From Macrostomum lignano (taxonomy: Eukaryota), in the NCBI GenBank assembly GCA_002269645.1, contig NIVC01001483.1:186001-250000 (forward strand): 64,000 nt of DNA, written 5' to 3'. This document shows positions 4,916 to 40,350 of the stretch, piece after piece; position 1 is the first letter of the stretch, and every line of letters begins with the position of its first letter. The position numbers were made by a program, and so were the translations under genes. A model generated the notes under the pieces. It was not told where the DNA came from. It saw only the letters and a list, made by a program, of their open reading frames with translations, and made no database searches.

Positions 4916-4967
4916 CAAACTCTGGACTTTAATGTCAAAACATACAGAGTTAATTGAAACATCTTTT

Positions 4968-5009
4968 CATTTCTTTATTGCCTCCCCCAACGGGGGCGCA
5001 GATTGCTAG
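4968..5009 (+). mobile_element. Helitron-like 3' terminus (CCCCCAACGGGGG hairpin, 9 nt, CTAG|T)
   Basis: Canonical hairpin + CTAG + T arrangement. A related copy at 42468-42506 (-) shares sequence up to CTAG and diverges immediately after it. Confidence 0.55.
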
Positions 5010-10292: not shown

Positions 10293-11124
10293 AGTTCATT
10301 GTGCCTACAAAATTCGCAGCTCAGTGTATCTCTAAAACAGAGTTCGGCAGAATCCGAAGACAGCCCTCAGACGGTGGGCGGCAGCAATCTATCAATCAAG
10401 CAGGCAGGATCAGCCCCCCAGATCTCAAAGAGCCAGAGCAGACCCAGCCTCCCAATCGCTCCGAGGCCTGTCAAACTGCAGAACTCCAGCGGCTGCGCTC
10501 GGCACTGACTGGTGGAGGAAGAGATAGCGCGTATATAAGACTACTACATGTACACTTGGATTGGAAATTCCAGCAGGGCCCCCTTCATTTTAGCGCCGCG
10601 AGCTTGATTGATGAATGGCGCAAGAGGGACAGCAAAGTTAGTGCCAGAGTGAAACTGTAAATAATTAGATGCAGCCAGGCCTCTCCAGAATCAGTGCGGC
10701 ATTGGTAGAGCAGCTTCGCCTATTTTAACCTGAGTTGATCGACACTGTGCGATACTAGCCCAGTTGTTTAGTGATGTGCCAGCGGCCCAGGCTCGATTCC
10801 AAGTGCAGTCACCTTAATTTGGCGCTAAATTGGAATCTCGGCTTGGCTCTGCTCCCAAGGCGCAGTGAAGTGTACATGCCTAACAATAAATAAAGTTAGG
10901 GCCGCTGTACACTCCTGTGTGACTGTGTGCCTGCTCAGGGGAATCAGCGAAATGGGCAGTAATGCCTCTCGTTGGTTGTGTGACATTGTCGGTTTAAGTG
11001 CTATAGGGTGTGCACTCAGTCCACATGCCTCTAATAAAAATACCAAGGACTTCTGATTGACATCAACTGGACTGGAAAACACTGCGATACCAGTAAGAGG
11101 ATTTTCAAAACCCATCAACCAAAG

Positions 11125-12765: not shown

Positions 12766-13204
12766 GTGCTGTTGGCACAGAAGTCAACGTGAGCTCGTCA
12801 GTTATTGAAATTCTTAGTGCAGTTAATTACTACATAAAGTCATGGGTGGCCAAAGCCCCCCTAAGGCTATCATCCACTTCGCTCAACGCCGCCCCCCGCT
12901 GTGAGAAGTGGCCACAGCAAGAAGCCAGTGAATAAGAGTATGTGAGCTCCGCATTAATAAGCCTTGACAACAAAGCTCATTAGCTCCTTGACTCGAGAAA
13001 GTTAGCAGACAAAAAGCATCAGAGAAAACTCGGACAGATGAAATCCAGCAGTGCCACTAATGAGACATGCCCGTGACAGGTAAGGACGACGATGCAGCGA
13101 GGTTAAGGTCACACAGACGCAGGAAAGGACTGAGGCGTTGTAATTGTGTATACGCGAATGTGATTCTCGTAAAGAGTGAAACTAATAAAAAGATTTTTTG
13201 AAAA

Positions 13205-13962
13205 AAAGACAGTGAGACAGAGAGAGAGAGGGAGACAGTGAGACAGAGGCTGAGAGGGAGACAGTGAGACAGAGGCAGAGAGGGAGACAGTGAGACAGAG
13301 GGTGAGAGGGGAGACAGTGAGACAGTGAGTGAGAGGGGAGACAGTGAGACAGAGGGTGAGAGGGAGACAGTGAGACAGAGAGTGAGAGGGAGACAGTGAG
13401 ACAGAGAGTGAGAGGGAGACAGTGAGACAGAGAGTGAGAGGGGAGACAGTGAGACAAGAGGGTGAGAAGGGAGACAGTGAGACAGAGGGTGAGAGGGAGA
13501 CAGTGAGACAGAGAGTGAGAGGGAGACAGTGAGACAGAGGGTGAGAGGGGAGACAGTGAGACAGAGAGTGAGAGGGGAGACAGTGAGACAGAGAGTGAGA
13601 GGGAGACAGTGAGACAGAGGGTGAGAGGGGAGACAGTGAGACAGAGAGTGAGAGGGAGACAGTGAGACAGAGAGTGAGAGGGAGACAGTGAGACAGAGGG
13701 TGAGAGGGAGACAGTGAGACAGAGAGTGAGAGGGGAGACAGTGAGACAGAGAGTGAGAGGGAGACAGTGAGACAGAGAGTGAGAGGGAGACAGTGAGACA
13801 GAGAGTGAGAGGGAGACAGTGAGACAGAGGGTGAGAGGTAGACAGTGAGACAGAGGGTGAGAGGTAGACAGTGAGACAGAGAGTGAGAGGGAGACAGTGA
13901 GACAGAGGGTGAGAGGGAGACAGTGAGACAGAGGGTGAGAGGGGAGACAGTGAGACAGAGGA
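13205..13962. repeat. about 26-bp minisatellite (GACAGTGAGACAGAGAGTGAGAGGGA)n
   Basis: Visible tandem array. Confidence 0.95.
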
Positions 13963-17009: not shown

Positions 17010-17495
17010 TCGGAAAATGGGAATTTGGATTCTAAGAATGGGGATTGTTTTGGGATTCTTAGAATGGGGATTGTTTTGGGATTCTTAGAATGGGGATTGT
17101 TTTGGGATTCTTAGAATGGGGATTGTTTTGGGATTCTTAGAATGGGGATTGTTTTGGGATTCTTAGAATGGGGATTGTTGAGATTCTTAGAATGGGGATT
17201 GTTGAGATTCTTAGAATGGGGATTGTTTTGGGATTCTTAGAATGGGGATTGTTTTGGGATTCTTAGAACGGGGATTGTTTTGGGATTCTTAGAATGGGGA
17301 TTGTTGGGATTCTAAGAATGGGGATTGTTGGAAATCTTGGAATGGGGAGTGTTGAGATTCTTAGAATGGGGATTTTTGGGATTCTAAGAATGTGGATTAT
17401 TGGCATTCTAAGAATGGGGATTATTGGGATTCTAAGAATGGGGATTGTTGGGATTCTAAGAATGGGGATTAGGATTCTTAGAATGCGGATTGGTA
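17010..17495 (+). repeat. about 24-26-bp minisatellite family B (GGGATTCTWAGAATGGGGATTGTT)n
   Basis: Visible array. Same family as 18330-19060 and, inverted, 19665-20330. Confidence 0.9.
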
Positions 17496-18329: not shown

Positions 18330-19060
18330 ATTCAGAATCAGCTTTGGGGAATTAATTTGGGATTCTGAGGATGGAGACTGGGATTCTAAAAATAAGTATC
18401 GGGATTCTAAGAAAGGGGATTGGGATTCTTAGAAGTGGGATTAAGATCTTAGAATTGGGATTCGGAATCTAAGAATGGGAATTGGGATTCTTAGAAGTGG
18501 GATTAAGATCTTAGAATTGGGATTGGGAATCTAAGAATGGGAATTGGGATTCTAAGAATGGGGATTGAGATTTCAAGAATGGGGGGTCAGGATTCTAAGA
18601 TTATGGATTGTTGGGATTCTAATAACGGGGATTGTTGGCATTCTTAGAATGGAGATTTTTGCGATTCTAAGAATGGAGATTGTTGGGATTCTAAGAATGG
18701 GGATTGTTGGGATTCTAAGAATGGGGATTGTTGGGATTCTAAGAATGGAGATTTTTGCGATTATAAGAATGGGGATTGTTTGGATTCTAAGAATGGGGAT
18801 TGTTTGGATTTTAAGAATGGGAATTGTTTGGATTCTTAGAATGGGGATTGTTTGGATTTTAAGAATGGGAATTGTTTGGATTCTAAGAATGGGGATTGTT
18901 GGGATTCTAAGAATGGGGATTGAGATTTTGAGAATGGAGATTGGGATTCTGATAATGGGGATTGGGATTCTGAGAATGGAGATTGGGATTCTGAGAATGG
19001 GGATTGGTATTCTAAGAATTGGGATCGGCATTCTAAGAATGGGTATTGAGACTCTTACTA
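18330..19060 (+). repeat. minisatellite family B array
   Basis: GGGATTCTAAGAATGG units. Confidence 0.9.
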
Positions 19061-19664
19061 ATGGTAATTGGGGAAGCAAAAGGCAAACATAATGCTTAGT
19101 AACTATATGAAAAATAAGATGCATATTTCATGAAAAACACAGAATACGATGGCTTTAAGCTGAAAAATAGAAGGCAGCAAGAAGTTGTTGTGTAAGTCAG
19201 AATCCAGATATAAAAACATTCAGTCAGAAAAAATACATCTAATTGGCCAAGTTTGGAAGGCAAATTGTTTGAAAAAGGCATTCCTGATCACATAGCACTG
19301 CGCGATAAAAAGCGCGATAAAAATAAAAAAAATCGCCGAAACTTTAATTGGAAACTACACGAAGGGAATGAGGCTGAGTTTGTGAAGAGTAAAACGGCGC
19401 ACGCCAAAAATAACTAAAAAGAGAGCGTGTACACTGCTGGTACTACTAACGAAACTATAATCTATTCATTCATTTAGAGGAAACAAATTTTGGCAAAAAT
19501 ACGAATTGAGAACAGCTGTTGAGCATCAGGGTTGGGAAGAATCGAAATAAAAAGTCATAATCATAATTTCACTTAAAGCTAGGAATCTCAATTCTTAAGA
19601 AGCTTAATACTCATGCTAGGATAAATATAGTTCTTTACGTATAAAGCATATTTTTCATTCTAGG

Positions 19665-20330
19665 AATCCACAATGATCCTCATTCTAGGAATCCCAATCC
19701 CTCATTCTACGAGTAGGATTCCCAATCCATCATTCTAGGAATCCAAATCTCTCATTCTAGGAATCCCAATCCCGAATTCTAGGAATCCCGAATTCTCGTT
19801 CTAGGAATCCAAATCCCTCATTCTAGGAATCCAAATCCCTCATTCTAGGAATCTAAATCCCTCATTCTAGGAATCCAAATCCCTCATTCTAGGAATCCCA
19901 ATCCCTCATTCTAGGAATCCCGAATTCTCGTTCTAGGAATCCAAATCCCTCATTCTAGGAATCCAAATCCCTCATTCTAGGAATCCATATCCCTCATTCT
20001 AGGAACCCCAATCCTCAATCTAGGAATCACAATCTTCATTCTAGGAACCCCAAGCCTCATTCTAGGAATCCACAATGATCCTCAATCTAGGAATCCCAAT
20101 ACTGATTCCAGGAACACCAATCCTCATTCTAGGAACCCCAATCCTCATTCTAGGAACCCCAATACTGATTCTAGGAATCCCAAGCCTCATTGTAGAAATC
20201 ACAATCTTCATTCTAGGAATCCACCATGATCTTCATTTTAGGAATCCCAAGCCTCATTCTAGGAATCCCAATCCTCATTTTAGGAATCCCAAGCCTCTTT
20301 TCTAGGAATTCCTAATCTAGGAATTAAAGG
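19665..20330 (-). repeat. minisatellite family B array, inverted (ATCCCTCATTCTAGGAATCCC)n
   Basis: Reverse complement GGGATTCCTAGAATGAGGGAT matches family B. Confidence 0.85.
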
Positions 20331-20506: not shown

Positions 20507-21289
20507 TCAGCCCCAGCGCCTCAGACAGAACTTGGCACCGAACCACAGGACCGAACCGGCGGCAGCGCAGAAGGCGGTGTTCAGTGCGACGCTGCTCACA
20601 AAAATGGTTCGAGTTCGCTGTTGAAACTCGGCCGCATCGTTGACCCTGGGAAACGGCACCCCGGGCACAGGCACGCCCAGGAACTGGCACAGCGGCTCCC
20701 AGCCTTCGGCCACTCGAAACACCAACAGACGCTCCTTTGGAATGCTTCGAATAACGTCCTCAACGTGACGATCAAATATCCTGATAAGCTCTTCGTCAGT
20801 AGCGTCGAGGTCAAGTCGCAGTCGCTGATCGAACAGCACCTCCTTCAGCTTGACAATGTAGTACAGTCCAATCAGGTGAAGCAGTGGGGTCAGCACCATC
20901 TGGATCACCTTGGCTAGTCGCAGAACTGTGCCTCTCATGCTAGTTGCCCATCGTTTAGGATCGCGCACGCTCAGCACAAACCTCGCATCCGGATAGATCC
21001 TGGCCAAGTCTTTGTAGAACAGGCAAGCTGGAAAATCTGCGGTAGCTTGGAAACCGCAGAATATTTTGTCAGCCAATTCTCTGGTCAAGCCGTTAGTTGA
21101 GGCCTGGTACCACAGCTTCAGATGCGAACGATTCTCGTGTAGAATATAGTCCATATGGTAGCACCTGCCACCCAGCAGGATCTCGAATGCTTTCATCTGC
21201 GAATTGGTGCCAGTGCGCATCAGGCCTACACTGATCACCTGAAGATTGCTACGATCCGTGTCCTCAAACTGACGCCTAGTTGACGTCAT
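20507..21289 (-). CDS. Sulfotransfer_4/SmSULT-like sulfotransferase, copy 1 (260 aa, C-terminal TM)
   Basis: PAPS-binding loop VISVGLMRTGTNS, CYHM, TADFP, RDPKRW, RLLVFRVAEGWEPLCQFLGVPVP..FPRVND, and a hydrophobic tail. Confidence 0.9.
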   Translation of the reverse strand: MTSTRRQFEDTDRSNLQVISVGLMRTGTNSQMKAFEILLGGRCYHMDYILHENRSHLKLWYQASTNGLTRELADKIFCGFQATADFPACLFYKDLARIYPDARFVLSVRDPKRWATSMRGTVLRLAKVIQMVLTPLLHLIGLYYIVKLKEVLFDQRLRLDLDATDEELIRIFDRHVEDVIRSIPKERLLVFRVAEGWEPLCQFLGVPVPGVPFPRVNDAAEFQQRTRTIFVSSVALNTAFCAAAGSVLWFGAKFCLRRWG

Positions 21290-22597: not shown

Positions 22598-23359
22598 TCA
22601 AGAAGACCACAGCTGAAGACAGCGCTTAACACTGAACCAGACCGCAGCGCCAACAGCAGTACAGAAGGCCACATTCAGAACTGATCCGAAAAGTATAAAT
22701 GAACCAATTTTACGTTGAAATTCTTTGGTATCATTCACGCACGGGAATGGCACGTCCGGCACCGGTACATTCAAGAATTTGCACAACGGTTCCCAGCCGT
22801 CTGTGACTCTGAACACTAACAGGCGCTCCTTAGGAATAGTCCGAATCACGGCTTCAGTGTGCCGATCAAAAGCGACAGCAAGTTCCTGGTCAGACATGCC
22901 TTGATTCATTCCCATTCTAGGGAACATTGCAGTTTGCAATTTGTCCATGTAATTGAAGCCAATTAGCCAGGCTATTGGGGGCAGGATGTGTTTGCCAGCC
23001 GATTGGGCCTTGTAAACTGTAGCCCGGACACTCTGCACCCAGCCTTCGGGCTCGCGCAGGCTAAGAATAAATTTGGCTTCATGATAAATCTGCATCAACT
23101 CCGAATAGAAGTGAGCAGCTGGAAAGTCTGTGCAAGCTCGAAATTCGCTTAACATTTCGTCTGCGATTTCTTTTGTGAGACCTTCTGTAGCGGCTTTGAG
23201 CCACAGTTTCAAATGATGTCGCTTCTCCTCTATGATCACTTCCATATGGTAGCAGCGGCCGCCAAGCAGAATCTCTAGCGCCTTCATCTGCGAATTGGTG
23301 CCAGTTCGCATCAGGCCAGCGCCAATCACTATGGGGCCTGTTGAAGATTTCGATGCCAT
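22598..23359 (-). CDS. Sulfotransfer_4/SmSULT-like sulfotransferase, copy 2 (likely start MASKSS; in-frame ATG also at 23395)
   Basis: Same motifs (VIGAGLMRTGTNS, CTDFP, GWEPLCKFL) and N-terminal length matches the paralogs. Confidence 0.9.
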   Translation of the reverse strand: MASKSSTGPIVIGAGLMRTGTNSQMKALEILLGGRCYHMEVIIEEKRHHLKLWLKAATEGLTKEIADEMLSEFRACTDFPAAHFYSELMQIYHEAKFILSLREPEGWVQSVRATVYKAQSAGKHILPPIAWLIGFNYMDKLQTAMFPRMGMNQGMSDQELAVAFDRHTEAVIRTIPKERLLVFRVTDGWEPLCKFLNVPVPDVPFPCVNDTKEFQRKIGSFILFGSVLNVAFCTAVGAAVWFSVKRCLQLWSS

Positions 23360-23434
23360 GCAAAATAGCGTTGAATGCTTTGAGTTGTTAAACATGCTCT
23401 AGTCCCGTTAGCCAAGGCCAAGGCTAGCACAAAT

Positions 23435-25325
23435 TAGTGCTGGGGTCCTCAGTGTAGGATGAGGGTCATTGGTGCTGGGTCCTCAGTGTAGGATGTGGGT
23501 CATGGGTGCTGGGTCCTCAGTGTAGGATGTGGGTCATTGGTGTTGGTGTCCTCAGTGTAGGATGTGGGTCATTAGTGTTGGGTCCTCAGTGTAGGATGTG
23601 GGTCATTGGTGTTGGGTCCTCAGTGTAGGATTTGGGTCATTGGTGTTGGGGTCCTCAGTGTAGGATGTGGGTCATTGGTGTTGGGTCCTCAGTGTAGGAT
23701 GTGGGTCATTGGTGTTGGTGTCCTCAGTGTAGGATGTGGGTCATTGGTGCTGGGTCCTCAGTGTAGGATGTGGGTCATTGGTGTTGGTGTCCTCAGTGTA
23801 GGATGTGGGTCATTGGTGCTGGGTCCTCAGTGTAGGATGTGGGTCATTGGTGCTGGGTCCTCAGTGTAGGATGTGGGTCATTGGTGATTGGTGTTGGGTC
23901 CTCAGTGTAGGATGAGGGTCATTGGTGTTGGGGTCCTCAGTGTAGGATGTAGGTCATTAGTGTTGGGTCCTCAGTGTAGGATGTAGGTCATTAGTGTTGG
24001 GTCCTCAGTGTAGGATGAGGGTCATTGATGTTGGGGTCCTCAGTGTAGGATGAGGCTAATTGGTGTTGGGGTCCTCAGTGTAGGATGAGGCTAATTGGTG
24101 CTGGGGTCCTCAGTGTAGGATGAGGCTAATTGGTGTTGGGGTCCTCAGTGTAGGATGAGGCTAATTGGTGCTGGGGTCCTCAGTGTAGGATGAGGCTAAT
24201 TGGTGTTGGGGTCCTCAGTGTAGGATGAGGCTAATTGGTGTTGGGGTCCTCAGTGTAGGATGAGGCTAATTGGTGTTGGGGTCCTCAGTGTAGGATGTGG
24301 GTCATTGGTGTTGGGGTCCTCAGTGTAGGATGAGGCTAATTGGTGTTGGGGTCCTCAGTGTAGGATGAGGCTAATTGGTGTTGGGGTCCTCAGTGTAGGA
24401 TGAGGCTAATTGGTGTTGGGGTCCTCAGTGTAGGATGAGGGTCATTGGTGTTGGGGTCCTCAGTGTAGGATGAGGCTAATTGGTGTTGGGGTCCTCAGTG
24501 TAGGATGAGGCTAATTGGTGTTGGGGTCCTCAGTGTAGGATGAGGCTAATTGGTGTTGGGGTCCTCAGTGTAGGATGAGGCTAATTGGTGCTGGGGTCCT
24601 CAGTGTAGGATGAGGCTAATTGGTGTTGGGGTCCTCAGTGTAGGATGAGGCTAATTGGTGTTGGGGTCCTCAGTGTAGGATGAGGCTAATTGGTGTTGGG
24701 GTCCTCAGTGTAGGATGTGGGTCATTGGTGTTGGGTCCTCAGTGTAGGATGAGGCTAATTGGTGTTGGGGTCCTCAGTGTAGGATGAGGCTAATTGGTGT
24801 TGGGGTCCTCAGTGTAGGATGAGGCTAATTGGTGTTGGGGTCCTCAGTGTAGGATGAGGCTAATTGGTGTTGGGGTCCTCAGTGTAGGATGAGGCTAATT
24901 GGTGTTGGGGTCCTCAGTGTAGGATGAGGCTAATTGGTGTTGGGGTCCTCAGTGTAGGATGAGGCTAATTGGTGTTGGGGTCCTCAGTGTAGGATGAGGC
25001 TAATTGGTGTTGGGGTCCTCAGTGTAGGATGAGGCTAATTGGTGTTGGGGTCCTCAGTGTAGGATGAGGCTAATTGGTGTTGGGGTCCTCAGTGTAGGAT
25101 GAGGCTAATTGGTGTTGGGGTCCTCAGTGTAGGATGAGGCTAATTGGTGTTGGGGTCCTCAGTGTAGGATGAGGCTAATTGGTGTTGGGGTCCTCAGTGT
25201 AGGATGAGGCTAATTAGTGCTGGGGTCCTCAGTGTAGGATGAGGCTAATTGGTGTTGGGGTCCTCAGTGTAGGATGAGGCTAATTGGTGTTGGGGTCCTC
25301 AGTGTAGGATGTGGGTCATTAGTGT
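23435..25325. repeat. about 35-36-bp minisatellite (GGTCCTCAGTGTAGGATGAGGCTAATTGGTGTTGG)n
   Basis: Visible array with a gradient of variant units. Confidence 0.95.
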
Positions 25326-26298: not shown

Positions 26299-27067
26299 TT
26301 AAAAATACTTTCTCAGGCAGTATTTGGCCCCAAACCAAGCAGCAGAGCCGACAGCGGCATAAAAGCCGGCATTGAGTACAACGCCAGCAACTCGAACAAT
26401 CTGAGTCCTGCGTCGGAACTGGTTCGTGTCGTTCACATTCGGAAACGGCACATCCGGCACGGGCAAGCCTAAGAACTTGCACAATGGCTCCCAACCGTCA
26501 GACACTTGGAATACCAACAGTCTGTCCTTAGGAATTGTCTGCTTGACAGCTTCAACGTGTCGTTCGTACGCAGCGATCATCTCTTGGTCGGACATGTCAA
26601 ACCGGAAGCCCAGACGCTGCTCAAGGATCAAGTCAATGACAGGTACAGAGGAAGACATGCCTAGGAGCCAATCTACTGGTTTCGGAATCTTCAGCTGTAC
26701 ACTTCTCAGCTCGGCAATGGTGCTGCGAACGCTTAAAACCCAACGTTTTGGATCTCGAATGCTGAGTACAAACTTTGCGTTGGGATAAATCTTCATCAAT
26801 TCTGGATAGAAGTGAGCAGCTGGAAAGTCTGTCGAAGCTCGAAAATCGCCCAGAATCTTTTCAGCAAGCTCTTTAGTTAAGCCTCCCTTGGCGGCCTGGT
26901 ACCAAAGCTTCAGATCATTTCTTCGCTCTTTCGCAATCACCTCCATATGGTAGCAGCGGCCGCCAAGCAGAATCTCCAGCGCCTTCATCTGCGAATTGGT
27001 GCCAGTTCGCATTAGGCCGGCGCCAATCACTACGGGGCCTATCTATTTTAACATCTCTGTTACACAT
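26299..27067 (-). pseudogene. Sulfotransferase copy 3, frameshifted near the N-terminus by a 4-bp ATAG duplication
   Basis: ATG TGT AAC AGA GAT GTT AAA ATAG ATAG GCC...; deleting one ATAG gives MCNRDVKIGPVVIGAGLMRTGT in frame with the otherwise intact 243-codon ORF. Confidence 0.7.
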
Positions 27068-27727
27068 TGTTACAGTCAGCTAAGAATGACAAAATAGATT
27101 CATAAAACCAATGAGTCGAGCCATGCCACGCTTTCTTATTTTTAAGAACTGGATGGACATGTAATAATTAGGCTAAAAATTAACATAGAACCTTAATCTC
27201 CTTAACTAAAAGCTTTATGAATACCAATAGAGCTATGAGAAAGGCAAAGCATATCAAAAGATGAACACTGGGCCTGCCTCCTATCAAAAGCAATAACACA
27301 TTTTTTTGCTAGAAAACGTCAAACCCTTACCTATCACTGTAATATATTTTGGTCGGTAACTGGTCGGTAATATTATATTATATTATATATAATGGTCAGT
27401 TACCGACACACTTATTGGGCTTTAACTTAGTGAAAAAAAGAGAAAGAAAACACCTAATGTGACAAAGTTATGTAAGGCAAATTTATTGAAATGGTAATAA
27501 AACTCGCAACAGGTCAGCTGTGCAAAAAATTTTCGCTGGTTAAAAAAATTTCGTTACATAATCTAAAATTGTTGTGAAATTTGTTAAAATTAAACAAAAT
27601 GAAAAGCGTTCAAATAAAACTACAAGAAAACTTTTTAAGAGAGTTCTTTTCAACCGTAAGTTTCGAAATCTATACTTTTGGCAATGTAAAATCACATTTA
27701 TTGAGAGTTGATAAACTAGCTTAAGAA

Positions 27728-29515
27728 GCCTTCTATTGTATAGGTCAAGCAAACCTACGCAGACAGCACTTCAGACCGAACCAGCAGCCTTCTATTGTAT
27801 AGGTCAAGCAAACCTACGCAGACAGCACTTCAGACCGAACCAGCAGCCTTCTATTGTATAGGTCAGGCAAACCTACGCAGACAGCACTTCAGACCGAACC
27901 AGCAGCCTTCTATTGTATAGGTCAGGCAAACCTACGCAGACAGCACTTCAGACCGAACCAGCAGCCTTCTATTGTATAGGTCAGGCAAACCTACGCAGAC
28001 AGCACTTCAGACCGAACCAGCAGCCTTCTATTGTATAGGTCAGGCAAACCTACGCAGACAGCACTTCAGACCGAACCAGCAGCCTTCTATTGTATAGGTC
28101 AGGCAAACCTACGCAGACAGCACTTCAGACCGAACCAGCAGCCTTCTATTGTATAGGTCAAGCAAACCTACGCAGACAGCACTTCAGACCGAACCAGCAG
28201 CCTTCTATTGTATAGGTCAGGCAAACCTACGCAGACAGCACTTCAGACCGAACCAGCAGCCTTCTATTGTATAGGTCAAGCAAACCTACGCAGACAGCAC
28301 TTCAGACCGAACCAGCAGCCTTCTATTGTATAGGTCAGGCAAACCTACGCAGACAGCACTTCAGACCGAACCAGCAGCCTTCTATTGTATAGGTCAAGCA
28401 AACCTACGCAGACAGCACTTCAGACCGAACCAGCAGCCTTCTATTGTATAGGTCAGGCAAACCTACGCAGACAGCACTTCAGACCGAACCAGCAGCCTTC
28501 TATTGTATAGGTCAGGCAAACCTACGCAGACAGCACTTCAGACCGAACCAGCAGCCTTCTATTGTATAGGTCAAGCAAACCTACGCAGACAGCACTTCAG
28601 ACCGAACCAGCAGCCTTCATATTGTATAGGTCAAGCAAACCTACGCAGACAGCACTTCAGACCGAACCAGCAGCCTTCTATTGTATAGGTCAAGCAAACC
28701 TACGCAGACAGCACTTCAGACCGAACCAGCAGCCTTCTATTGTATAGGTCAGGCAAACCTACGCAGACAGCACTTCAGACCGAACCAGCAGCCTTCTATT
28801 GTATAGGTCAGGCAAACCTACGCAGACAGCACTTCAGACCGAACCAGCAGCCTTCTATTGTATAGGTCAAGCAAACCTACGCAGACAGCACTTCAGACCG
28901 AACCAGCAGCCTTCTATTGTATAGGTCAAGCAAACCTACGCAGACAGCACTTCAGACCGAACCAGCAGCCTTCTATTGTATAGGTCAGGCAAACCTACGC
29001 AGACAGCACTTCAGACCGAACCAGCAGCCTTCTATTGTATAGGTCAAGCAAACCTACGCAGACAGCACTTCAGACCGAACCAGCAGCCTTCTATTGTATA
29101 GGTCAAGCAAACCTACGCAGACAGCACTTCAGACCGAACCAGCAGCCTTCTATTGTATAGGTCAGGCAAACCTACGCAGACAGCACTTCAGACCGAACCA
29201 GCAGCCTTCTATTGTATAGGTCAGGCAAACCTACGCAGACAGCACTTCAGACCGAACCAGCAGCCTTCTATTGTATAGGTCAAGCAAACCTACGCAGACA
29301 GCACTTCAGACCGAACCAGCAGCCTTCTATTGTATAGGTCAAGCAAACCTACGCAGACAGCACTTCAGACCGAACCAGCAGCCTTCTATTGTATAGGTCA
29401 GGCAAACCTACGCAGACAGCACTTCAGACCGAACCAGCAGCCTTCTATTGTATAGGTCAAGCAAACCTACGCAGACAGCACTTCAGACCGAACCAGCAGC
29501 CTTCTATTGTATAGG
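27728..29515. repeat. 59-bp minisatellite (about 30 units) derived from the 3' end of sulfotransferase copy 4
   Basis: The reverse complement of the unit reads TGG TTC GGT CTG AAG TGC TGT CTG CGT AGG TTT GCC TGA + CCTATACAATAGAAGGCT. Confidence 0.95.
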
Positions 29516-30292
29516 TCAGGCAAACCTACGGAGACAGCACTTCAGACCAAACCAGACAGCAAGGCCCACAGCCGAGCAAAAGCCGAAATTAGCGAGAGCG
29601 CCAATTGTGTAAAAGCCAATGATTATCTTCTGGAATTCAGCAGTATCATTCACATTTGGAAACGGTACATCGGGTACCGGCAGCTCCAGGAAGTTGCACA
29701 ATGGTTCCCAACCGTCCGAAACTCGAAACACTAACAGTCGCTCTTTGGGAATAGTTCGAATCACCGCCTCGGTGTGACGGTTAAACGCTTCAATCAATTC
29801 TTTGTCTGTCATGTCCACTCGAATACCCAATCGCGAGTCGAAGATGTTGTGATGCAAAGGCAGAAAGTAGGTCAGATTGAAAAGCCACAACGATGGGGCC
29901 AGCATACAACCCATAGCCTTCATACCCTTAAAGATGGTACTGCGAACGCTCTCAACCCATCGTTGGGAATCGCGAACGCTTAGCACAAACTTGGCATTGG
30001 GATAAATCTTGAGTAGCTCAGGATAGAAATGCGCTACAGGAAAGTCTGTTGTAGCAACAAAACCGTCAAAGATTTGGTCAGCCAGCTGTTTTGTTAAACC
30101 CTCTTTGGCAGCCTGATTCCACAGCTTCAAGTGGTGTCGCTTCTGTGTCATGATTACGGACATATGGTAGCACCGGCCGCCAAGCAGAATCTCTAGCGCC
30201 TTCATCTGCGAGTTGGTGCCAGTTCGCATCAGGCCAACACCAAACACCAATGGACCCGTAGTAGACTGTTGCAACTTGCTATCAAGAGACAT
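29516..30292 (-). CDS. Sulfotransfer_4/SmSULT-like sulfotransferase, copy 4 (258 aa)
   Basis: Family motifs intact, and near-identical to copy 5. Confidence 0.9.
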   Translation of the reverse strand: MSLDSKLQQSTTGPLVFGVGLMRTGTNSQMKALEILLGGRCYHMSVIMTQKRHHLKLWNQAAKEGLTKQLADQIFDGFVATTDFPVAHFYPELLKIYPNAKFVLSVRDSQRWVESVRSTIFKGMKAMGCMLAPSLWLFNLTYFLPLHHNIFDSRLGIRVDMTDKELIEAFNRHTEAVIRTIPKERLLVFRVSDGWEPLCNFLELPVPDVPFPNVNDTAEFQKIIIGFYTIGALANFGFCSAVGLAVWFGLKCCLRRFA

Positions 30293-30522
30293 TGCGCTTG
30301 CTTGTTGATGTCAGACAATAATAAAAAATGAAAACAGAAATTTGAGCGCAAAATTTACAGCGCTTAAGCTCTCGACAATTGCGTGACAGTGGGGGAGGGG
30401 GGTCGCAACTTCTTACACCGAGATTCGATTAGATAATAGCAACGTGTTGTTTCTATTTTATTTATTGCTTCTAAATATTTTTATAAAACTAACTTAAACT
30501 AACCAAAAACGTTTACCTAAAT

Positions 30523-31402
30523 CAGGGGTCGACAACCTTTTCAGAGCAAGGGCCAAAAGCCAAATTTTTCAAGGGCTCAGAGGGGCCAATAACATAAAGA
30601 AGTGAAAAACCACAGGTGCATCCACAGACTACCTAAGTGCCATTTAACTACTTTAACTTACTAATTGTTTATTTACTTAAGTAGTCTGTGGTTGTGTCAT
30701 GTCAGACTGAACAAACAATTTTTATTCTATTGATGATGATCAAAACCTTAATCTCATCCCAACCATTTCGCCAGGGGTCAGCGAAATGGGCGGCAACGCC
30801 TCCTCGCTGTTTCCGGACGCACGGAGCCCCTGCCCCTGCAGCTAAGTCAATTAAATCAACTCAACCATTGAGATCCCCCACCCCAAAACCTGTCCTATTC
30901 CTTCTGTTCTCAATCCAACTCCAATAAACACCCCCTTCTGGAAACATTCTGACTTGCAGTCATCTTTCCCCCACAGAAGGACAACACAAGATAGGTATGA
31001 GAAAGGTGAGATAGAAGGGGAAGAAATAGGTGGCCGTATACATGCGCAACCATCCTGATTTACACCAGCCGTGCGACTTACTTATGAAAGAAACCTAAAC
31101 AACAACTGACGTGATTTCTGTTAAACGGCAGGAGTAACTATGACTGTATTTGTGAAGGCTAAATGCTTCTCCATCTAGTTAATACTACATGTACGTGTGT
31201 ATTTCTTCGGATGGGCATTTTTGCGACTTACCTTGGCTGGGCCCCTCGTCAGCTGGTTAGGTGCTGCGCATGTACATGTATGAGGTGGACTGAAGTTTAG
31301 GGGGGTGGATACAACGCTAGATCACCGAGGACCTGGGGGGGGGGAGGATTGGAAGGCTTCGGGGCCGGATTTGGCCCTGGGACCGGAGGTTGCCGACCCC
31401 TG
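30523..31402. mobile_element. non-autonomous hAT (Charlie-like) element, 880 bp
   Basis: TIRs CAGGGGTCGACAACC / GGTTGCCGACCCCTG and a perfect 8-bp TSD ACCTAAAT (30515-30522, 31403-31410). Confidence 0.85.
31036..31282. mobile_element. diverged copy of the CATACATGCGCAAC-TIR MITE, nested in the hAT element
   Basis: Ends TATACATGCGCAAC / TGCGCATGTACATGTATG, internal similarity to 56185-56482, and TSD-like AGGTGGCC/AGGTGGAC. Confidence 0.65.
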
Positions 31403-32152
31403 ACCTAAATATAGGCCACAGAATTAAACTTTTTTACTTTCAAACGAAATTGCTTGAGCATATTAGTTGAGATATTAAGCCCTCGTAACTAACCAAGGCC
31501 AACTGTGCTTAATTCGCTAACACATGGAAAAACAAAACTTTAATAATGCAAAATGAGTGCTAGCTTAAAAAATAAGTAATGAAATAACAAAGATTAAAGA
31601 TACACGTTTTATTAGTTTTCATCAGTAATTACTTCCAGTAAACCATTAAGTAAATGAGTAAATAGTGACATATCTAGTGATACAGAAATGCGCTAATTAC
31701 TTGTATATTGTGGTTTCTTTGAAATTCTAAAATAAATTGTAATAAACACTATAAAGATTTTTCCACTTAAGACTAAAGTATTCTTGGTTTATGAGAATCT
31801 CGAAGGATAGTTTATGGGAGAACGAAAGGATGTTTAATAGGCGATTCTAAGATAAGAGGAAAAGGGTTCTCATACGTGCAAAAATATTGTATATAAAAAC
31901 GTTTAATGTAACAAAGTTATGCAATGCGAATTTATTTCAATTGTGATCACGAAAAGTTCATTGATTCAGATTTTTTTTGAGAAAAGCTGTGAAATTTGTT
32001 AAAAATAAAACTTATTGTAATTTAAACAACAAATTCTGCTCTAAAAACTCTCAGATAAAGCGTATCCATTAGGAACTTTTTTAACCACAAAGTCTTGTAG
32101 CATTATAAAATCGTGTTAACTGATAGTTAATTAACTAATACAGTATAGCTTA

Positions 32153-33781
32153 AGAAGCCTTCATATTGCATAGGTCAGGCAAACCTACGCAGACAGCACT
32201 TCAGACCGAACCAGCAGCCTTCATATTGTATAGGTCAGGCAAACCTACGCAGACAGCACTTCAGACCGAACCAGCAGCCTTCATATTGTATAGGTCAGGC
32301 AAACCTACGGAGACAGCACTTCAGACCGAACCAGCAGCCTTCATATTGTATAGGTCAGGCAAACCTACGGAGACAGCACTTCAGACCGAACCAGCAGCCT
32401 TCATATTGCTTAGGTCAAGCAAACCTACGCAGACAGCACTTCAGACCAAACCAGCAGCCTTCTATTGTATAGGTCAAGCAAACCTACGCAGACAGCACTT
32501 CAGACCGAACCAGCAGCCTTCTATTGTATAGGTCAGGCAAACCTACGCAGACAGCACTTCAGACCGAACCAGCAGCCTTCATATTGTATAGGTCAGGCAA
32601 ACCTACGCAGACAGCACTTCAGACCGAACCAGCAGCCTTCATATTGTATAGGTCAGGCAAACCTACGCAGACAGCACTTCAGACCCAACCAGCAGCCTTC
32701 ATATTGTATAGGTCAGGCAAACCTACGGAGACAGCACTTCAGACCGAACCAGCAGCCTTCATATTGTATAGGTCAGGCAAACCTACGGAGACAGCACTTC
32801 AGACCGAACCAGCAGCCTTCATATTGCTTAGGTCAAGCAAACCTACGCAGACAGCATTTCAGACCAAACCAGCAGCCTTCTATTGTATAGGTCAAGCAAA
32901 CCTACGCAGACAGCACTTCAGACCGAACCAGCAGCCTTCTATTGTATAGGTCAGGCAAACCTACGCAGACAGCACTTCAGACCGAACCAGCAGCCTTCAT
33001 ATTGTATAGGTCAGGCAAACCTACGCAGACAGCACTTCAGACCGAACCAGCAGCCTTCATATTGTATAGGTCAGGCAAACCTACGCAGACAGCACTTCAG
33101 ACCCAACCAGCAGCCTTCATATTGTATAGGTCAGGCAAACCTACGGAGACAGCACTTCAGACCGAACCAGCAGCCTTCATATTGTATAGGTCAGGCAAAC
33201 CTACGGAGACAGCACTTCAGACCGAACCAGCAGCCTTCATATTGCTTAGGTCAAGCAAACCTACGCAGACAGCACTTCAGACCGAACCAGCAGCCTTCTA
33301 TTGTATAGGTCAGGCAAACCTACGCAGACAGCACTTCAGACCGAACCAGCAGCCTTCTATTGTATAGGTCAGGCAAACCTACGCAGACAGCACTTCAGAC
33401 CGAACCAGCAGCCTTCTATTGTATAGGTCAAGCAAACCTACGCAGACAGCACTTCAGACCGAACCAGCAGCCTTCTATTGTATAGGTCAGGCAAACCTAC
33501 GCAGACAGCACTTCAGACCGAACCAGCAGCCTTCTATTGTATAGGTCAAGCAAACCTACGCAGACAGCACTTCAGACCGAACCAGCAGCCTTCTATTGTA
33601 TAGGTCAGGCAAACCTACGCAGACAGCACTTTACACCGAACCAGCAGCCTTCTATTGTATAGGTCAAGCAAACCTACGCAGACAGCACTTCACACCGAAC
33701 CAGCAGCCTTCTATTGTATAGGTCAAGCAAACCTACGCAGACAGCACTTAACACCGAACCAGCAGCCTTCTATTGTATAGG
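32153..33781. repeat. 59/60-bp minisatellite derived from the 3' end of sulfotransferase copy 5, with a 418-bp higher-order repeat
   Basis: Same unit as 27728-29515. The variant pattern recurs at a 418-nt offset (ORFs 32465/32883 and 32524/32942). Confidence 0.95.
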
Positions 33782-34558
33782 TCAAGCAAACCTACGGAGA
33801 CAGCACTTCAGACCAAACCAGACAGCAAGGCCCACAGCCGAGCAGAAGCCGAAATTAGCAAGAGCACTAATTGTGTAAAAGCCAATGGCTTTCTTCTGGA
33901 ATTCAGCAGTATCATTCACATTTGGAAACGGTACATCGGGTACCGGCAGCTCCAGGAAGTTGCACAATGGTTCCCAACCATCCGAAACTCGAAACACTAA
34001 CAGTCGCTCTTTGGGAATAGTTCGAATCACCGCCTCGGTGTGACGGTTAAACGCTTCAATCAATTCTTTGTCTGTCATGTCCACTCGAATACCCAATCGC
34101 GAGTCGAAGATGTTGTGATGCAACGGCAGAAAGTAGGTCAGATTGAGAAGCCACAACGATGGGGCCAGCATACAACCCATAGCCTTCATACCCTTAAAGA
34201 TGGTACTGCGAACGCTCTCAACCCATCGTTGGGGATCGCGAACGCTCAGCACGAACTTGGCATTGGGATAAATCTTGAGTAGCTCAGGATAGAAAGCCGC
34301 TACAGGAAAGTCTGTTGTAGCAACAAAACCGTCAAAGATTTGGTCAGCCAGCTGTTTTGTTAAACCCTCTTTGGCAGCCTGATTCCACAGCTTCAAGTGG
34401 TGTCGCTTCTGTTTCATGATTACGAACATATGGTAGCACCGGCCGCCAAGCAGAATCTCTAGCGCCTTCATCTGCGAGTTGGTGCCAGTTCGCATCAGGC
34501 CAACACCAAACACCAATGGACCCGTAGTGGACTGTTGCAACTTGCTATCAAGAGACAT
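33782..34558 (-). CDS. Sulfotransfer_4/SmSULT-like sulfotransferase, copy 5 (258 aa, start MSLDSK)
   Basis: Family motifs intact. Start chosen by identity with copy 4. Confidence 0.9.
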   Translation of the reverse strand: MSLDSKLQQSTTGPLVFGVGLMRTGTNSQMKALEILLGGRCYHMFVIMKQKRHHLKLWNQAAKEGLTKQLADQIFDGFVATTDFPVAAFYPELLKIYPNAKFVLSVRDPQRWVESVRSTIFKGMKAMGCMLAPSLWLLNLTYFLPLHHNIFDSRLGIRVDMTDKELIEAFNRHTEAVIRTIPKERLLVFRVSDGWEPLCNFLELPVPDVPFPNVNDTAEFQKKAIGFYTISALANFGFCSAVGLAVWFGLKCCLRRFA

Positions 34559-35634
34559 TGCGCTTGCTTGCGATTCAGTTGATGTTAAACAATAAAAAAC
34601 GATAGCATGAATTAGTGCGCAAAGGTTACGCTTAGCTCTGCGGCACTGTGGTGGTCGCAACTCAGCCACGGATACTAGAATAACTAGACTAGATTAGCCA
34701 CTCAGCAAATTTGCGTGTAAGCTACTTTCAGTTCAGTAGTAAGTTAAACTGAAGCATTTTAATGTAATTTCTAAAAGACAAGGTTTATTTATTGGCTCTT
34801 ACACCCCCAAGCTTAAACCCTCAAACTCCACACGGAACCTCTACCCCCGCCCCACCGCCCAATTTTTATTACCCTACTCGGTTGTTCCAATCTAAATCAG
34901 CCATGTACATTTCAGTGGCTAATGTACATTATGGCTGAACCAATTAGCAAGCTGTTTACGCCTGCAAGCTTTGGCTTCTAAACTTATCGAAGTCATTTCA
35001 GCTGCCATTATTTTTATAAAATAACGTACGTATTCTTTATTGCTACTGAACTGAAAGTAGAAAGCTGTTTTACCAAGTATATATGACTGAGTGGCCCATT
35101 TAGTTATTCTAGTATCTGTGCTCACACCCAAAAAATTAATTTTCAACTTTTGGAGATAAAAACGTTCAAGTACGAATGCACTCGTACCAGACTTTTCAAA
35201 ATCCATTTTTACTTTTATGAAGATTCTAAGATATACAGCTACATTTGAGCTGGGTGACGAACTTGCTTAAACCCTCGTAACTAACCAAGGCCAACTGTGC
35301 TTAACTTAATTCGCTAACACATGGAGGAACAAAACTTCAATGCAAAATGAGTGCTAGCTTGAAAAAAAATTAGCAAAGAAATAACAAACAGACTAAAGAT
35401 ACACGTTCTATTAGTTTCCATTAGTAACTAGAAATAAAATGGACACGCTGTACTTTTTTTGCAAATTGTAAACTAAAATAATAACAGTATAGAATGGTAT
35501 AATACCGTGACTAGGTATAGCAATGGAAATGAATAAATATTAACATATCTAGTGATAAAGAAATGCGCTAATTATATTGTGGTTTCTTTAAAATAGATTG
35601 TAACTATTCAGATTTTTACCGCGTAAAGTATTAT

Positions 35635-37990
35635 TGGTTATTGGGATATTCCTGAAGGATGGTTTATGGGATATTCCTGAAGGATGGTTTATGGGAGAAT
35701 CCTGAAGGATGGTTTATGGGAGATTTTTGAAGGATGATTTATGGGAGAATCCTGAAGGATGGTTTATGGGAGAATCCTGAAGGATGGTTTATGGGAGATT
35801 TTTGAAGGATGATTTATGGGAGAATCCTGAAGGATGGTTTATGGGAGATTTTTGAAGGATGATTTATGGGAGAATCCTGAAGGATGGTTTATGGGAGATT
35901 TTTGAAGGATGGTTTATGGGAGAATCCTGAAGGATGGTTTATGGGAGATTTTTGAAGGATGGTTTATGGGAGAATCCTGAAGGATGGTTTATGGGAGTTT
36001 TTTGAAGGATGGTTTATGGGAGATTTTTGAAGGATGGTTTATGGGAGAATCCTAAAGGATGGTTTATGGGATATTCCTGAAGGATGGTTTATGGGAGATT
36101 TTTGAAGGATGATTTATGGGAGAATCCTGAAGGATGGTTTATGGGAGATTTTTTAAGGATGGTTTATGGGAGAATCCTGAAGGATGGTTTATGGGAGATT
36201 TTTGAAGGATGATTTATGGGAGAATCCTGAAGGATGGTTTATGGGAGATTTTTGAAGGATGATTTATGGGAGAATCCTGAAGGATGGTTTATGGGAGATT
36301 TTTGAAGGATGGTTTATGGGAGAATCCTGAAGGATGGTTTATGGGAGTTTTTTGAAGGATGGTTTATGGGAGATTTTTTAAGGATGGTTTATGGGAGAAT
36401 CCTGAAGGATGGTTTATGGGAGATTTTTGAAGGATGGTTTATGGGAGATTTTTGAAGGATGGTTTATGGGAGATTTTTGAAGGATGGTTTATGGGAGAAT
36501 CCTGAAGGATGATTTATGGGAGAATCCTAAAGGATGGTTTATGGGAGATTTTTGAAGGATGGTTTATGGGAGATTTTTGAAGGATGATTTATGGGAGAAT
36601 CCTGAAGGATGGTTTATGGGAGATTTTTGAAGGATGATTTATGGGAGAATCCTGAAGGATGGTTTATGGGAGATTTTTGAAGGATGGTTTATGGGAGAAT
36701 CCTGAAGGATGGTTTATGGGAGATTTTTGAAGGATGGTTTATGGGATATTCCTGAAGGATGGTTTATGGGAGATTTTTGAAGGATGGTTTATGGGAGATT
36801 TTTGAAGGATGGTTTATGGGAGAATCCTGAAGGATGGTTTATGGGAGATTTTTGAAGGATGGTTTATGGGAGATTTTTGAAGGATGGTTTATGGGAGAAT
36901 CCTGAAGGATGATTTATGGGAGAATCCTAAAGGATGGTTTATGGGAGATTTTTGAAGGATGGTTTATGGGATATTCCTGAAGGATGGTTTATGGGAGAAT
37001 CCTGAAGGATGGTTTATGGGAGATTTTTGAAGGATGATTTATGGGAGAATCCTGAAGGATGATTTATGGGAGAATCCTAAAGGATGGTTTATGGGAGATT
37101 TTTGAAGGATGGTTTATGGGAGATTTTTGAAGGATGGTTTATGGGAGAATCCTAAAGGATGGTTTATGGGAGATTTTTGAAGGATGGTTTATGGGAGAAT
37201 CCTGAAGGATGGTTTATGGGAGATTTTTGAAGGATGGTTTATGGGAGATTTTTGAAGGATGATTTATGGGAGAATCCTGAAGGATGGTTTATGGGAGAAT
37301 CCTGAAGGATGGTTTATGGGAGATTTTTGAAGGATGGTTTATGGGAGAATCCTGAAGGATGGTTTATGGGAGATTTTTGAAGGATGGTTTATGGGAGATT
37401 TTTGAAGGATGATTTATGGGAGAATCCTAAAGGATGGTTTATGGGAGAATCCTGAAGGATGGTTTATGGGAGAATCCTGAAGGATGGTTTATGGGAGATT
37501 TTTGAAGGATGATTTATGGGAGAATCCTGAAGGATGATTTATGGGAGAATCCTAAAGGATGGTTTATGGGAGATTTTTGAAGGATGGTTTATGGGAGATT
37601 TTTGAAGGATGATTTATGGGAGAATCCTGAAGGATGGTTTATGGGAGATTTTTGAAGGATGATTTATGGGAGAATCCTGAAGGATGGTTTATGGGAGATT
37701 TTTGAAGGATGGTTTATGGGAGAATCCTGAAGGATGGTTTATGGGAGTTTTTTGAAGGATGGTTTATGGGATATTCCTGAAGGATGGTTTATGGGAGATT
37801 TTTGAAGGATGATTTATGGGAGAATCCTGAAGGATGGTTTATGGGAGATTTTTGAAGGATGGTTTATGGGATATTCCTGAAGGATGGTTTATGGGAGATT
37901 TTTGAAGGATGGTTTATGGGAGAATCCTAAAGGATGGTTTATGGGAGAATCCTGAAGGATGGTTTATGGGAGAATCATGAAGGATGACTT
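35635..37990. repeat. 25-bp minisatellite (GAAGGATGGTTTATGGGAGAATCCT / ...GAGATTTTT)n, about 2.35 kb
   Basis: Visible array of two alternating unit variants. Confidence 0.95.
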
Positions 37991-38077
37991 ATAGTAGATT
38001 CTTAAGCCGACAAAACCAACAAGAGGAGGCAATGCACTTAAGTCGTGAACTTATTGATAAAAAATATTTTGCAAATG

Positions 38078-38857
38078 TCAAACAAACCGGCGCAGAGCGA
38101 ACTTCAACCCAAACCAGACAATCGCCCCAGCAACCGAGCAGACAGCCAAATTAGTAGTGACACTGGCCATATCGATGAAGTGAGCAAAGAACACAAACTC
38201 ATTAGTGTCTTTAATATGCGGAAACGGTCGATCGGGCACAGGTACACCCAGGTAGCTGCACAGAGGCTCCCAACCATCGGTGACTCGATAGATCAACAGT
38301 CGATCTTTAGGAATCGTTCTTTGTACAGCTTCAGCATGCCGTTCAAAAGCAGCGGTCATCTCCGCTTCAGTCATGTCAAAATTGAACACGAATCTAGATT
38401 GAAATATAGCATCGTGTAACAGTTGGAAGTAGCTGAGATCCCACAGCCACCGAGTCAGAGGTAACATCCGGCCCACAGCTCGATAGACACGACCAATAGT
38501 CAGTTTCATGCTATTCGACCAACGCTTGGGATCGCGAAGGCTTAAAATGAACTTCGCCTCGGGATAAATCTGCGCCAACTCGGCGTAAAACATTGCCGTA
38601 GGAAAATCTGCTGCCGCAACAAAACCGTCAAATATTTGATCGGCTAGTTCTTTAGTCAGGCCCTGAGTAGCGGCTCTGTGCCACAGTTTGAAATGATCCC
38701 GCCTCTCAGACATTATCACCTGCATGTGATAGCAACGACCGTTTAGAAGTCTCTCCAAGGCTTTCATCTGCGAATTGGTGCCAGTTCGCATCAGACCTGT
38801 GCATATCACTTTTGGCCCACCCTGCGACTGCTCACTTTGAGTATCCGGTTCTGTCAT
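38078..38857 (-). CDS. Sulfotransfer_4/SmSULT-like sulfotransferase, copy 6 (259 aa)
   Basis: VICTGLMRTGTNS, CYHM, AADFP, RDPKRW, GWEPLCSYL, and a TM tail. Confidence 0.9.
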   Translation of the reverse strand: MTEPDTQSEQSQGGPKVICTGLMRTGTNSQMKALERLLNGRCYHMQVIMSERRDHFKLWHRAATQGLTKELADQIFDGFVAAADFPTAMFYAELAQIYPEAKFILSLRDPKRWSNSMKLTIGRVYRAVGRMLPLTRWLWDLSYFQLLHDAIFQSRFVFNFDMTEAEMTAAFERHAEAVQRTIPKDRLLIYRVTDGWEPLCSYLGVPVPDRPFPHIKDTNEFVFFAHFIDMASVTTNLAVCSVAGAIVWFGLKFALRRFV

Positions 38858-39555: not shown

Positions 39556-40350
39556 CTAGCTCTGAGCACAGGTAGAGGACCGCAGCAAGTATTTAACACC
39601 AACCCAGACACCTCCAAAGACAGCTGAACAAACTGCTAAATTAAGCAGAGGCCCGACAATCTTGAGCCCGACAATTGTTTCTAAGAATCGTTTCGTATCG
39701 TTCAGATGAGGAAACGGTTCGTTCGAAGGCACGGGCAGCTCCAGGAACTTACACAACGGTTCCCAACCGTCTGACACTCGAAATACCAACAGTCTCTCCT
39801 TCGGTATGGTTCGAATCACTGTGTCATTGTGACGGTTAAACGCGTCGATCATTTCCGCATCAGACATGTCAAAATTGAAGCCCAAACGAGAGCCCAGCAC
39901 AGCGTCACTCAGAGGCAAGTAGTGAGACAGTCCCAGAAGCCATCGCACTGGCGGTAGCATGTACTCAACTGTCAGTTTAGACTGCAGAATGGTAGCCCGG
40001 ACACTTCTCACCCAATCGGTTGGATCGCGAATGCTCAGTACAAACTTGGCGTCAGGATAAATCTGCATCAATTCCTTGTAGAAGTGAGCAGCTGGAAAGT
40101 CTGTACAAGCCAGAAAGTCGTCAAATATTTCCTCAGCCAATTCTTTGCTCAAGCCTTGGATAGCAGCTCGATGCCACAGCTGCAGATGTGACAGCTTCTC
40201 TTCCATCACAATGTCCATATGATAGCAGCGGCCGCCAAGCAGCATCTCCAGCGCCTTCATCTGCGAATTGGTGCCAGTTCGCATCAGGCCAGCGCCAATC
40301 ACACGAAGACCAGCTGAAGATTTGTTTTTCCTACTAGCAGCAGAAGACAT
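39556..40350 (-). CDS. Sulfotransfer_4/SmSULT-like sulfotransferase, copy 7 (264 aa)
   Basis: RVIGAGLMRTGTNS, CTDFP, RDPTDW, GWEPLCKFL, and a TM tail. Confidence 0.9.
   Translation of the reverse strand: MSSAASRKNKSSAGLRVIGAGLMRTGTNSQMKALEMLLGGRCYHMDIVMEEKLSHLQLWHRAAIQGLSKELAEEIFDDFLACTDFPAAHFYKELMQIYPDAKFVLSIRDPTDWVRSVRATILQSKLTVEYMLPPVRWLLGLSHYLPLSDAVLGSRLGFNFDMSDAEMIDAFNRHNDTVIRTIPKERLLVFRVSDGWEPLCKFLELPVPSNEPFPHLNDTKRFLETIVGLKIVGPLLNLAVCSAVFGGVWVGVKYLLRSSTCAQS

Follow-up and report, generated by a model that had tools for sequence, protein, structure and literature searches.

The sequence analysed here is a 64,000-nucleotide stretch of the Macrostomum lignano genome, referred to below as the window (positions 186,001 to 250,000 of contig NIVC01001483.1 in Mlig_3_7, GCA_002269645.1, a PacBio-based draft assembly). 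Coordinates are those of the window unless another contig is named. Downstream of an NDUFV1-like gene comes a run of seven consecutive intronless paralogues of the Sulfotransfer_4 family, denoted g1 to g7 and all encoded on the minus strand. The subject of this study is a minisatellite that directly follows g4 (29516-30292), in which a 59-bp unit composed of the last codons of the gene, its stop codon and the first bases of its 3' flank is repeated some thirty times. The surroundings are generally rich in repeats: tandem arrays fill 25.8 kb of the 64 kb (40%), with 24 arrays of at least 400 bp found by Tandem Repeats Finder (TRF), and simple and tandem repeats account for 15% of the Mlig_3_7 genome (PMC5730564).

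The g4 gene is a single open reading frame encoding 258 amino acids. Residues 16-220 match PF17784 (Sulfotransfer_4) with E=2.6e-63 and 214 bits, against a Pfam gathering score of 22.8; the scores of g3, g5 and g6 are similar. An earlier, sequence-only reading of this stretch had named the gene 'SULT copy 4', a label that is loose, since the product is a sulfotransferase of the PF17784 type and does not belong to the cytosolic SULT family. The last 36 or so residues (223-258) are hydrophobic, with a Kyte-Doolittle value of 1.6-1.7, and resemble a C-terminal membrane anchor. The final WFGxK motif of this tail is common to g1, g3, g4, g5 and g6.

TRF reports the array behind g4, here called A4, at 27727-29560, with a period of 59, 31.1 copies, 98% matches, no indels and a score of 3531. 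When the minus strand is split at GAAGGCT, 30 head-to-tail units are obtained at 27727-29497, of which 29 are 59 bp long and one, at 28612-28671, is 60 bp. The native template lies at 29498-29557 on the same strand and comprises 60 nt: 42 nt of gene end, GTC TGG TTT GGT CTG AAG TGC TGT CTC CGT AGG TTT GCC TGA (13 terminal codons, encoding V W F G L K C C L R R F A, and the stop codon), and 18 nt of 3' flank, CCTATACAATAGAAGGCT. The units occupy the whole interval between this template and the distal flank, where unique sequence picks up at 27726 with TCTTAAGCTAG... (TCTTAAGCTAGTTTATCAACTCTCAATAAATG...). That the repeat is g4's own end, and that about 30 copies are present, had both been noted in the sequence-only reading and are borne out by this count. 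Compared with the native copy, all units of A4 have lost the T of GTC and carry TTC for TTT and CTG for CTC, while the last codon before the stop is GCC in 15 units and GCT in the other 15.

A sister array, A5 (32156-33763, minus strand), is found behind g5 (33782-34558, also with a 258-residue product), the sister gene of g4. Of its 27 units, 12 are 59 bp long and 15 are 60 bp long; together with the native copy it spans 32156-33826 in all. The native template of g5, at 33764-33823, ends in GCT TGA in place of GCC TGA. The distal two thirds of A5 (32156-33291) show higher-order structure: a 418-bp block made up of seven units (5 x 60 + 2 x 59) is itself repeated approximately 2.7 times. A 21-mer of the unit has 43 matches in the window, with 0 expected by chance, and the unit is present nowhere else in the window. 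Read in the antisense direction, on the plus strand, the 60-bp units of A5 contain open frames of 121-141 amino acids at 32166-33367. These were considered as a gene and dropped, because 60 is a multiple of three and the unit is free of stops in two antisense frames; most likely no gene is present.

Two further contigs of the same assembly, NIVC01001518.1 (L002) and NIVC01002094.1 (L003), were found via the protein cluster of g5. Both are colinear copies of the window locus, and each contains a single gene of the g4/g5 type, directly followed by an array with the same junction as A4. The TRF spans, which include the native copy, are 10772-12725 in L002 and 10772-13847 in L003; the repeated units lie at 10836-12725 (32 units) and 10836-13847 (51 units), respectively. 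Unique DNA differs by about 1-3% among the three loci. Since this matches the 1.9-2.4% divergence at single-nucleotide polymorphisms published for the S, L1 and L2 subgenomes of Mlig_3_7 (PMC10733133), the three loci fit the three subgenomes and can be treated as putative homeologs. A tandem unit of 59 or 60 bp, a variable copy number and internal block duplications place the array among the minisatellites, or variable number tandem repeats (VNTRs). A metagenome scan for the unit junction returned 0 hits.

The single gene on both homeologs is the orthologue of g5, from which it differs by 0 amino acids and 5 synonymous substitutions, the g5 protein being identical on both; g4 differs from it at 22 sites, with 8 amino-acid changes. 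Between the coding sequences of g4 and g5, identity is 97.55%; of the base differences, 8 are synonymous and 11 non-synonymous, the latter changing 8 amino acids. Private base changes number 17 in g4 (8 amino-acid changes) and 1 in g5; because of this imbalance, and because the g5 protein is unchanged on the homeologs, g4 is the fast-evolving or relaxed copy of the pair.

The junction between units, GAAGGCT|GCTGG, is common to all four arrays. The T of GTC is missing in 140 of 140 repeated units and present only in the native copies, where its loss would shift the frame of the last 13 codons. The shared junction and the uniformly missing T together indicate that the four arrays have a single origin in one founding junction, in agreement with the earlier proposal of amplification from one junction. 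The same proposal had the array born from copy 4, which does not hold: the array also stands behind g5 and at two homeologous loci, and hence predates them. As the junction is common to four arrays on three contigs, the array is older than the subgenome split. The unit length had further been explained by a single 1-nt deletion, where two separate 1-nt indels are found. Besides the missing T, an ATAG/ATATG dimorphism in the untranslated part of the unit gives rise to the 59-bp and 60-bp types. The native copy of L002 and L003 (...CTG CGT AGA TTT GCT TGA CCGATACAATATGAATGCT) has the longer, ATATG form, which makes a template of 61 nt. It may be, then, that the array was founded by a unit of the 60-bp type, from which the 59-bp type arose later and spread.

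The trinucleotide GCT, an alanine codon, stands just before the template (29558-29560, minus strand) and recurs as the final 3 nt of the 18-nt untranslated piece, which makes it a candidate microhomology. At 3 nt it is near the chance expectation, such a match being expected at about 5% of random junctions by our own estimate. A precise microhomology junction would leave one copy between units; here the sequence is GCT|G-CTGG, with the T absent throughout, and an imprecise event or an extra step at the founding junction appears to be needed. The junction can be decomposed in several ways, of which a GCT microhomology plus the loss of one T is the simplest. Seeding by GCT microhomology, as put forward in the sequence-only reading, is thus correct as regards the presence of GCT at both places and weak as a mechanism, given the short match, its likelihood by chance and the alternative readings.

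The polarity of the process can be judged from the remaining paralogues. There is no such array behind g1 (20507-21289), g2 (22598-23395), g3 (26299-27030) or g6 (38078-38857), and g6, g1 and g3 keep homologous C-terminal codons. The g6 gene ends with GTC TGG TTT GGG TTG AAG TTC GCT CTG CGC CGG TTT GTT TGA (VWFGLKFALRRFV), while g1 and g3 end in WFGAK..CLR... Because these array-free paralogues end with homologous codons, the coding end is ancestral and the array derived from it.

Within one assembly, the four arrays contain 27 (A5), 30 (A4), 32 (L002) and 51 (L003) repeated units. The speed of this change is best seen in the comparison of the two homeologs, where the sequence near the gene shows 5 mismatches in about 2.4 kb (roughly 0.2%) and an identical coding sequence, while the arrays are 19 units apart and differ in internal order. 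The exact unit counts could be off in a draft assembly.

Several variants are shared between the live gene end and the repeated units in a lineage-specific manner. The leucine codon CTC is confined to the g4 and g5 native copies plus six units of A5, with none in L002 or L003. CCG is confined to the native copies of L002 and L003, plus 4 units of the L002 array and 7 of the L003 array, with none in the arrays of the window. ATATG is the native state only in L002 and L003; as a unit variant it is present in all four arrays and is not discriminating. GCC/GCT is polymorphic in all arrays, the native codon being GCC in g4 and GCT in g5. All coding variants common to native copies and arrays are synonymous. 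The sharing is best explained by continuing exchange between gene end and array. The suggestion of the sequence-only reading that the array templates C-terminal gene conversion receives indirect support, from these lineage-specific variants.

Exchange also appears to act on a larger scale. Identity between the g4 and g5 copies is 97% over a stretch that begins 12 bp before the ATG and ends 10 bp past the array, whereas their flanks are only about 70% similar; the distal flank of g5 (31830-32155, minus strand), for instance, is approximately 70% alignable to that of g4 (27400-27726). Since the high identity is confined to the coding sequence and the array, the g4/g5 duplication is old, with gene and array homogenised as a single block. 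In the g5-g4 spacer there is a remnant of the 25-bp repeat (31775-31830) and, at 31475-31725, a segment 85% similar to 35267-35594, distal to the array of g6, which shows that the old duplicated block took in the upstream array and spacer as well.

The upstream region of the gene in L002 and L003 corresponds to that of g5 (97.3%), and the distal flank to that of g4 (97.7%). Because the g5 upstream region and coding sequence are combined with the g4 distal flank, g4 and the spacer were most likely deleted on two homeologs when the two arrays, or the last 60 nt or so of coding sequence, recombined unequally. The alternative, a duplication private to the window lineage, would require the spacer flanks to have diverged by 15-30% while the gene diverged by about 2%. 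The position of an A5 x A4 crossover within the L002 and L003 arrays could not be located from the unit variants, the arrays having turned over too much.

A second, independent minisatellite derived from coding sequence is found in the same gene cluster. In L002, the coding sequence of the g7 orthologue is interrupted by a 70-bp array of 6.1 copies with 98% matches (TRF, 4948-5374). The resulting 350-nt insertion shifts the reading frame and cuts the protein to 122 amino acids, while L003 and the window (g7, 39556-40350, minus strand) have an intact gene of 264 amino acids and no 70-bp array. The native 70-bp segment is bounded by TGACGAC and TGACGCC. This array is young and specific to one copy, and shows that minisatellites are still being born in this genome from stretches of unique coding sequence flanked by short direct repeats. 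With its clearer flanking direct repeat, it supports the mechanism proposed in the sequence-only reading for the 59-bp array, a duplication seeded by microhomology.

Other arrays of the window also differ in length among the homeologs. The 35-bp array upstream of g2 (23432-25325) has 54, 31.7 and 5.3 copies in the window, L002 and L003, respectively; the 25-bp array behind g6 (35635-38000) measures 2.4 kb in the window and 1.2 kb in both L002 and L003; and a 24-bp array in the NDUFV1-like gene (44084-44969) has 34, 12.8 and 78 copies across the three loci. These unrelated neighbouring arrays vary between the loci just as much as the 59-bp array.

We consider the 59-bp array to be a locally born, unstable minisatellite that arose from the end of the g4/g5 gene and is most likely a neutral or mildly deleterious by-product, a reading to which we assign a probability of about 0.75. 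In this scheme, a tandem duplication of some 60 nt, reaching from the thirteenth codon before the stop to 18-19 nt into the 3' flank, would have occurred in the ancestral g4/g5 gene, probably by template slippage at the short GCT repeat and with one base lost at the junction. Slippage or unequal exchange would then have expanded the duplication to tens of copies, sometimes by several units at once, as the seven-unit higher-order repeat of A5 implies. As the shared junction shows, the array arose before the three subgenomes diverged; this has since been followed by rapid changes in length, by exchange with the live coding end, and by homogenisation of arrays and coding sequence between g4 and g5. 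The arrays were most likely also the substrate of a non-allelic recombination through which two homeologs lost a gene copy. The array behaves like the many others that fill some 40% of the window, and on this account it would reflect how very often minisatellites are born in the M. lignano genome and would be no functional device.

The sequence beyond the stop codons bears on how the array is expressed. The first canonical poly(A) signal after the g4 stop is an AATAAA at 27697-27702 (minus strand, +1814), approximately 25 nt beyond the array, where the sequence-only reading had placed it. It is kept in L002 and L003, and the equivalent behind g5 reads AGTTAA. A second AATAAA behind g4 (27482-27487) aligns with the first one behind g5 (31931-31936, minus strand as well) in a conserved block of the flank. 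A motif scan found no AATAAA or ATTAAA between the stop and the end of the array in either gene. An AATAGA, a weak variant poly(A) signal in vertebrates, is located 8 nt past the stop and recurs in every unit of the 59-bp type. Exact-protein look-ups with the 258-residue products of g4 and g5 gave no match and no transcript contigs. From these motifs, the array is probably transcribed, either as a long 3' untranslated region (UTR) or within a multi-gene precursor. A place in the mature 3' UTR is plausible, and the effects on nonsense-mediated decay or mRNA stability raised in the sequence-only reading are hypothetical. A readthrough product with an extended C-terminus was considered and dropped, since in the sense orientation every unit contains stops in all three frames.

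Several observations do not sit easily with the favoured account. The candidate microhomology is only 3 nt long and the junction imprecise, so that slippage is no more than plausible. The putative placement of the array in a 3' UTR is drawn solely from the units having no canonical AATAAA, and the possible weak signal AATAGA is present in all 59-type units. The array has been retained in all four gene copies and the AATAAA beyond it in three of the four, which is compatible with some selective maintenance. Finally, in the part of the units that corresponds to codons, 5 of 7 variable sites in the four arrays fall on third codon positions (7 of 9 changes), most of them synonymous; by our own calculation on this small sample the excess has a binomial p of about 0.045 by sites, and it is not predicted by pure neutrality. 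It could be due to chance, or to variants that entered the array from the selected native copy.

It is possible, if rather unlikely, that the array is intergenic. The g4 and g5 mRNAs would then be cleaved near the stop or in the first units, and mature transcripts would contain none or few of the ghost units. The variant AATAGA signals are suitably placed for this, the AATAAA beyond A4 is not conserved behind g5, and M. lignano genes are often cut from longer transcriptional units or multi-gene precursors (PMC5730564). On the other hand, neither canonical signal is found between the stop and the array end in either gene, and the AATAAA just past the array is conserved in g4 and on the two homeologs.

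A more far-reaching proposal, which we regard as speculative and on balance doubtful, is that M. lignano may have an unusually active process for making minisatellites from any unique sequence, whether coding or not. Arrays that include a gene end would then remain in exchange with the live copy; the ghost C-termini would serve as a pool of donors and acceptors for the codons of the tail anchor, and array and coding sequence together would drive concerted evolution and changes in gene copy number. If this were so, the third-position excess would reflect variants that had passed through the selected native copy.

It is improbable that the array is selected as a functional 3' UTR element that tunes the expression of these sulfotransferases, for instance through binding sites in many copies or a decay signal that depends on length. 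Its retention in four gene copies across the subgenome divergence, and the homogenisation of g4 and g5 together with their arrays, speak for such an element; a range from 27 to 51 copies among near-identical loci speaks against it, as does the fact that unrelated neighbours such as the 35-bp array are equally variable. A structured RNA was tried as a candidate and dropped, since three units fold no better than shuffled controls (z = 0.11) and 27000-35000 has 0 matches in Rfam. There is no sign of function for the array, and a neutral or mildly deleterious by-product remains the most likely reading.

The reverse polarity, in which a pre-existing minisatellite was captured as the C-terminus of the gene, is very improbable: the near-identity of the native copy and the units prevents the direction from being read from g4 alone, but the homologous terminal codons of the array-free g1, g2, g3 and g6 contradict it. 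An array inflated or invented by the long-read assembler is hardly credible even in a draft of a very repetitive, neopolyploid genome with 36% of the assembly length in chimeric scaffolds (PMC10733133), because four independent arrays on three contigs share one junction and contain structured variants, including the seven-unit higher-order repeat and alternating GCC/GCT, that are unlike random sequencing error; the array itself is real.

The window contains further repeats away from the array. A 28-bp unit, GGGAGGCTGGCCCAGCAACTGAGGATCT, recurs at 8626-9011 (in the opposite orientation), 11126-12764 and 51643-52320, and a unit of the GGATTCTTAGAATGGGGATTG type at 17027-17491, 18402-19048 and 19655-20317; such recurrence suggests dispersed minisatellite families, possibly borne by transposons. 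In the g5-g4 spacer, outside the array, an 882-bp element at 30522-31403 has 17-nt terminal inverted repeats (TCAGGGGTCGACAACCT / AGGTTGCCGACCCCTGA) and CCTAAA on both sides, and looks like the insertion of a DNA transposon of the miniature inverted-repeat transposable element (MITE) type. In the region of the NDUFV1-like gene, exon-like open reading frames are separated at 42691-42793 by an interstitial telomere-like repeat, (CTAACC)n, with about 17 copies.

The array reveals neither a new kind of element nor a demonstrated function. Its interest lies in the source sequence, which is present and working, so that birth, polarity and turnover can be read directly, and in the three homeologous copies within one assembly, which show the speed of the array: 19 units of difference at about 0.2% flank divergence. 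The arrays appear to exchange variants with the coding end and probably mediate the gain or loss of gene copies. Together with the gene-killing 70-bp case in the same cluster, they would make M. lignano a natural system for the study of de novo minisatellite formation; a literature search found no paper on minisatellites in Macrostomum.

In its unit of tens of base pairs, its variant repeats, its higher-order blocks and its rapid changes in length, the array resembles a classical minisatellite or VNTR. It differs in that the unit spans a stop codon, the copies are frame-shifted 'ghost' C-termini, and the first copy is the working end of a gene. Haber and Louis are said to have proposed in 1998 that minisatellites are born by slippage between short flanking direct repeats and then grow by unequal exchange. 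The human SLC6A3/DAT1 gene has a 40-bp VNTR in its 3' UTR that is not derived from the coding end and whose location in the UTR has been established by experiment. As in that gene, the M. lignano repeat lies between a stop codon and a poly(A) signal, here known from its motif only; in contrast to it, the units derive from the coding end. The mucins, the yeast FLO genes and the zinc-finger arrays of PRDM9 are examples of coding minisatellites that are in frame and translated. In these, as in the present case, coding sequence has been amplified in tandem and undergoes unequal exchange, whereas the 59-bp units shift the frame, contain stops in all sense frames and lie after the stop codon.

Besides the classical slippage model, the mechanism resembles the microhomology-mediated tandem duplication (MTD) of fission yeast, in which a short unique segment bounded by a short direct repeat is duplicated head to tail inside genes and can expand or collapse (10.1101/2020.03.03.972455 / PMC8639346). 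The 70-bp array of L002, bounded by TGACGAC and TGACGCC, is like an MTD as there described. The 59-bp array is less so: its microhomology is 3 nt, a base was lost, and its 27-51 copies have persisted across subgenomes, while the MTD of that account is a transient, subclonal variant. Minisatellites derived from transposons are a further comparison (reviews PMC6947457 and PMC3389668). Arrays with units of similar size are common in repeat-rich genomes, and several other arrays of the window belong to dispersed families. Unlike transposon-derived arrays, the one behind g4 and g5 has its source in the adjacent, unique end of a gene and not in a mobile element. What sets it apart is a unit made of a gene's last codons and stop codon, the first copy of which the gene continues to use.

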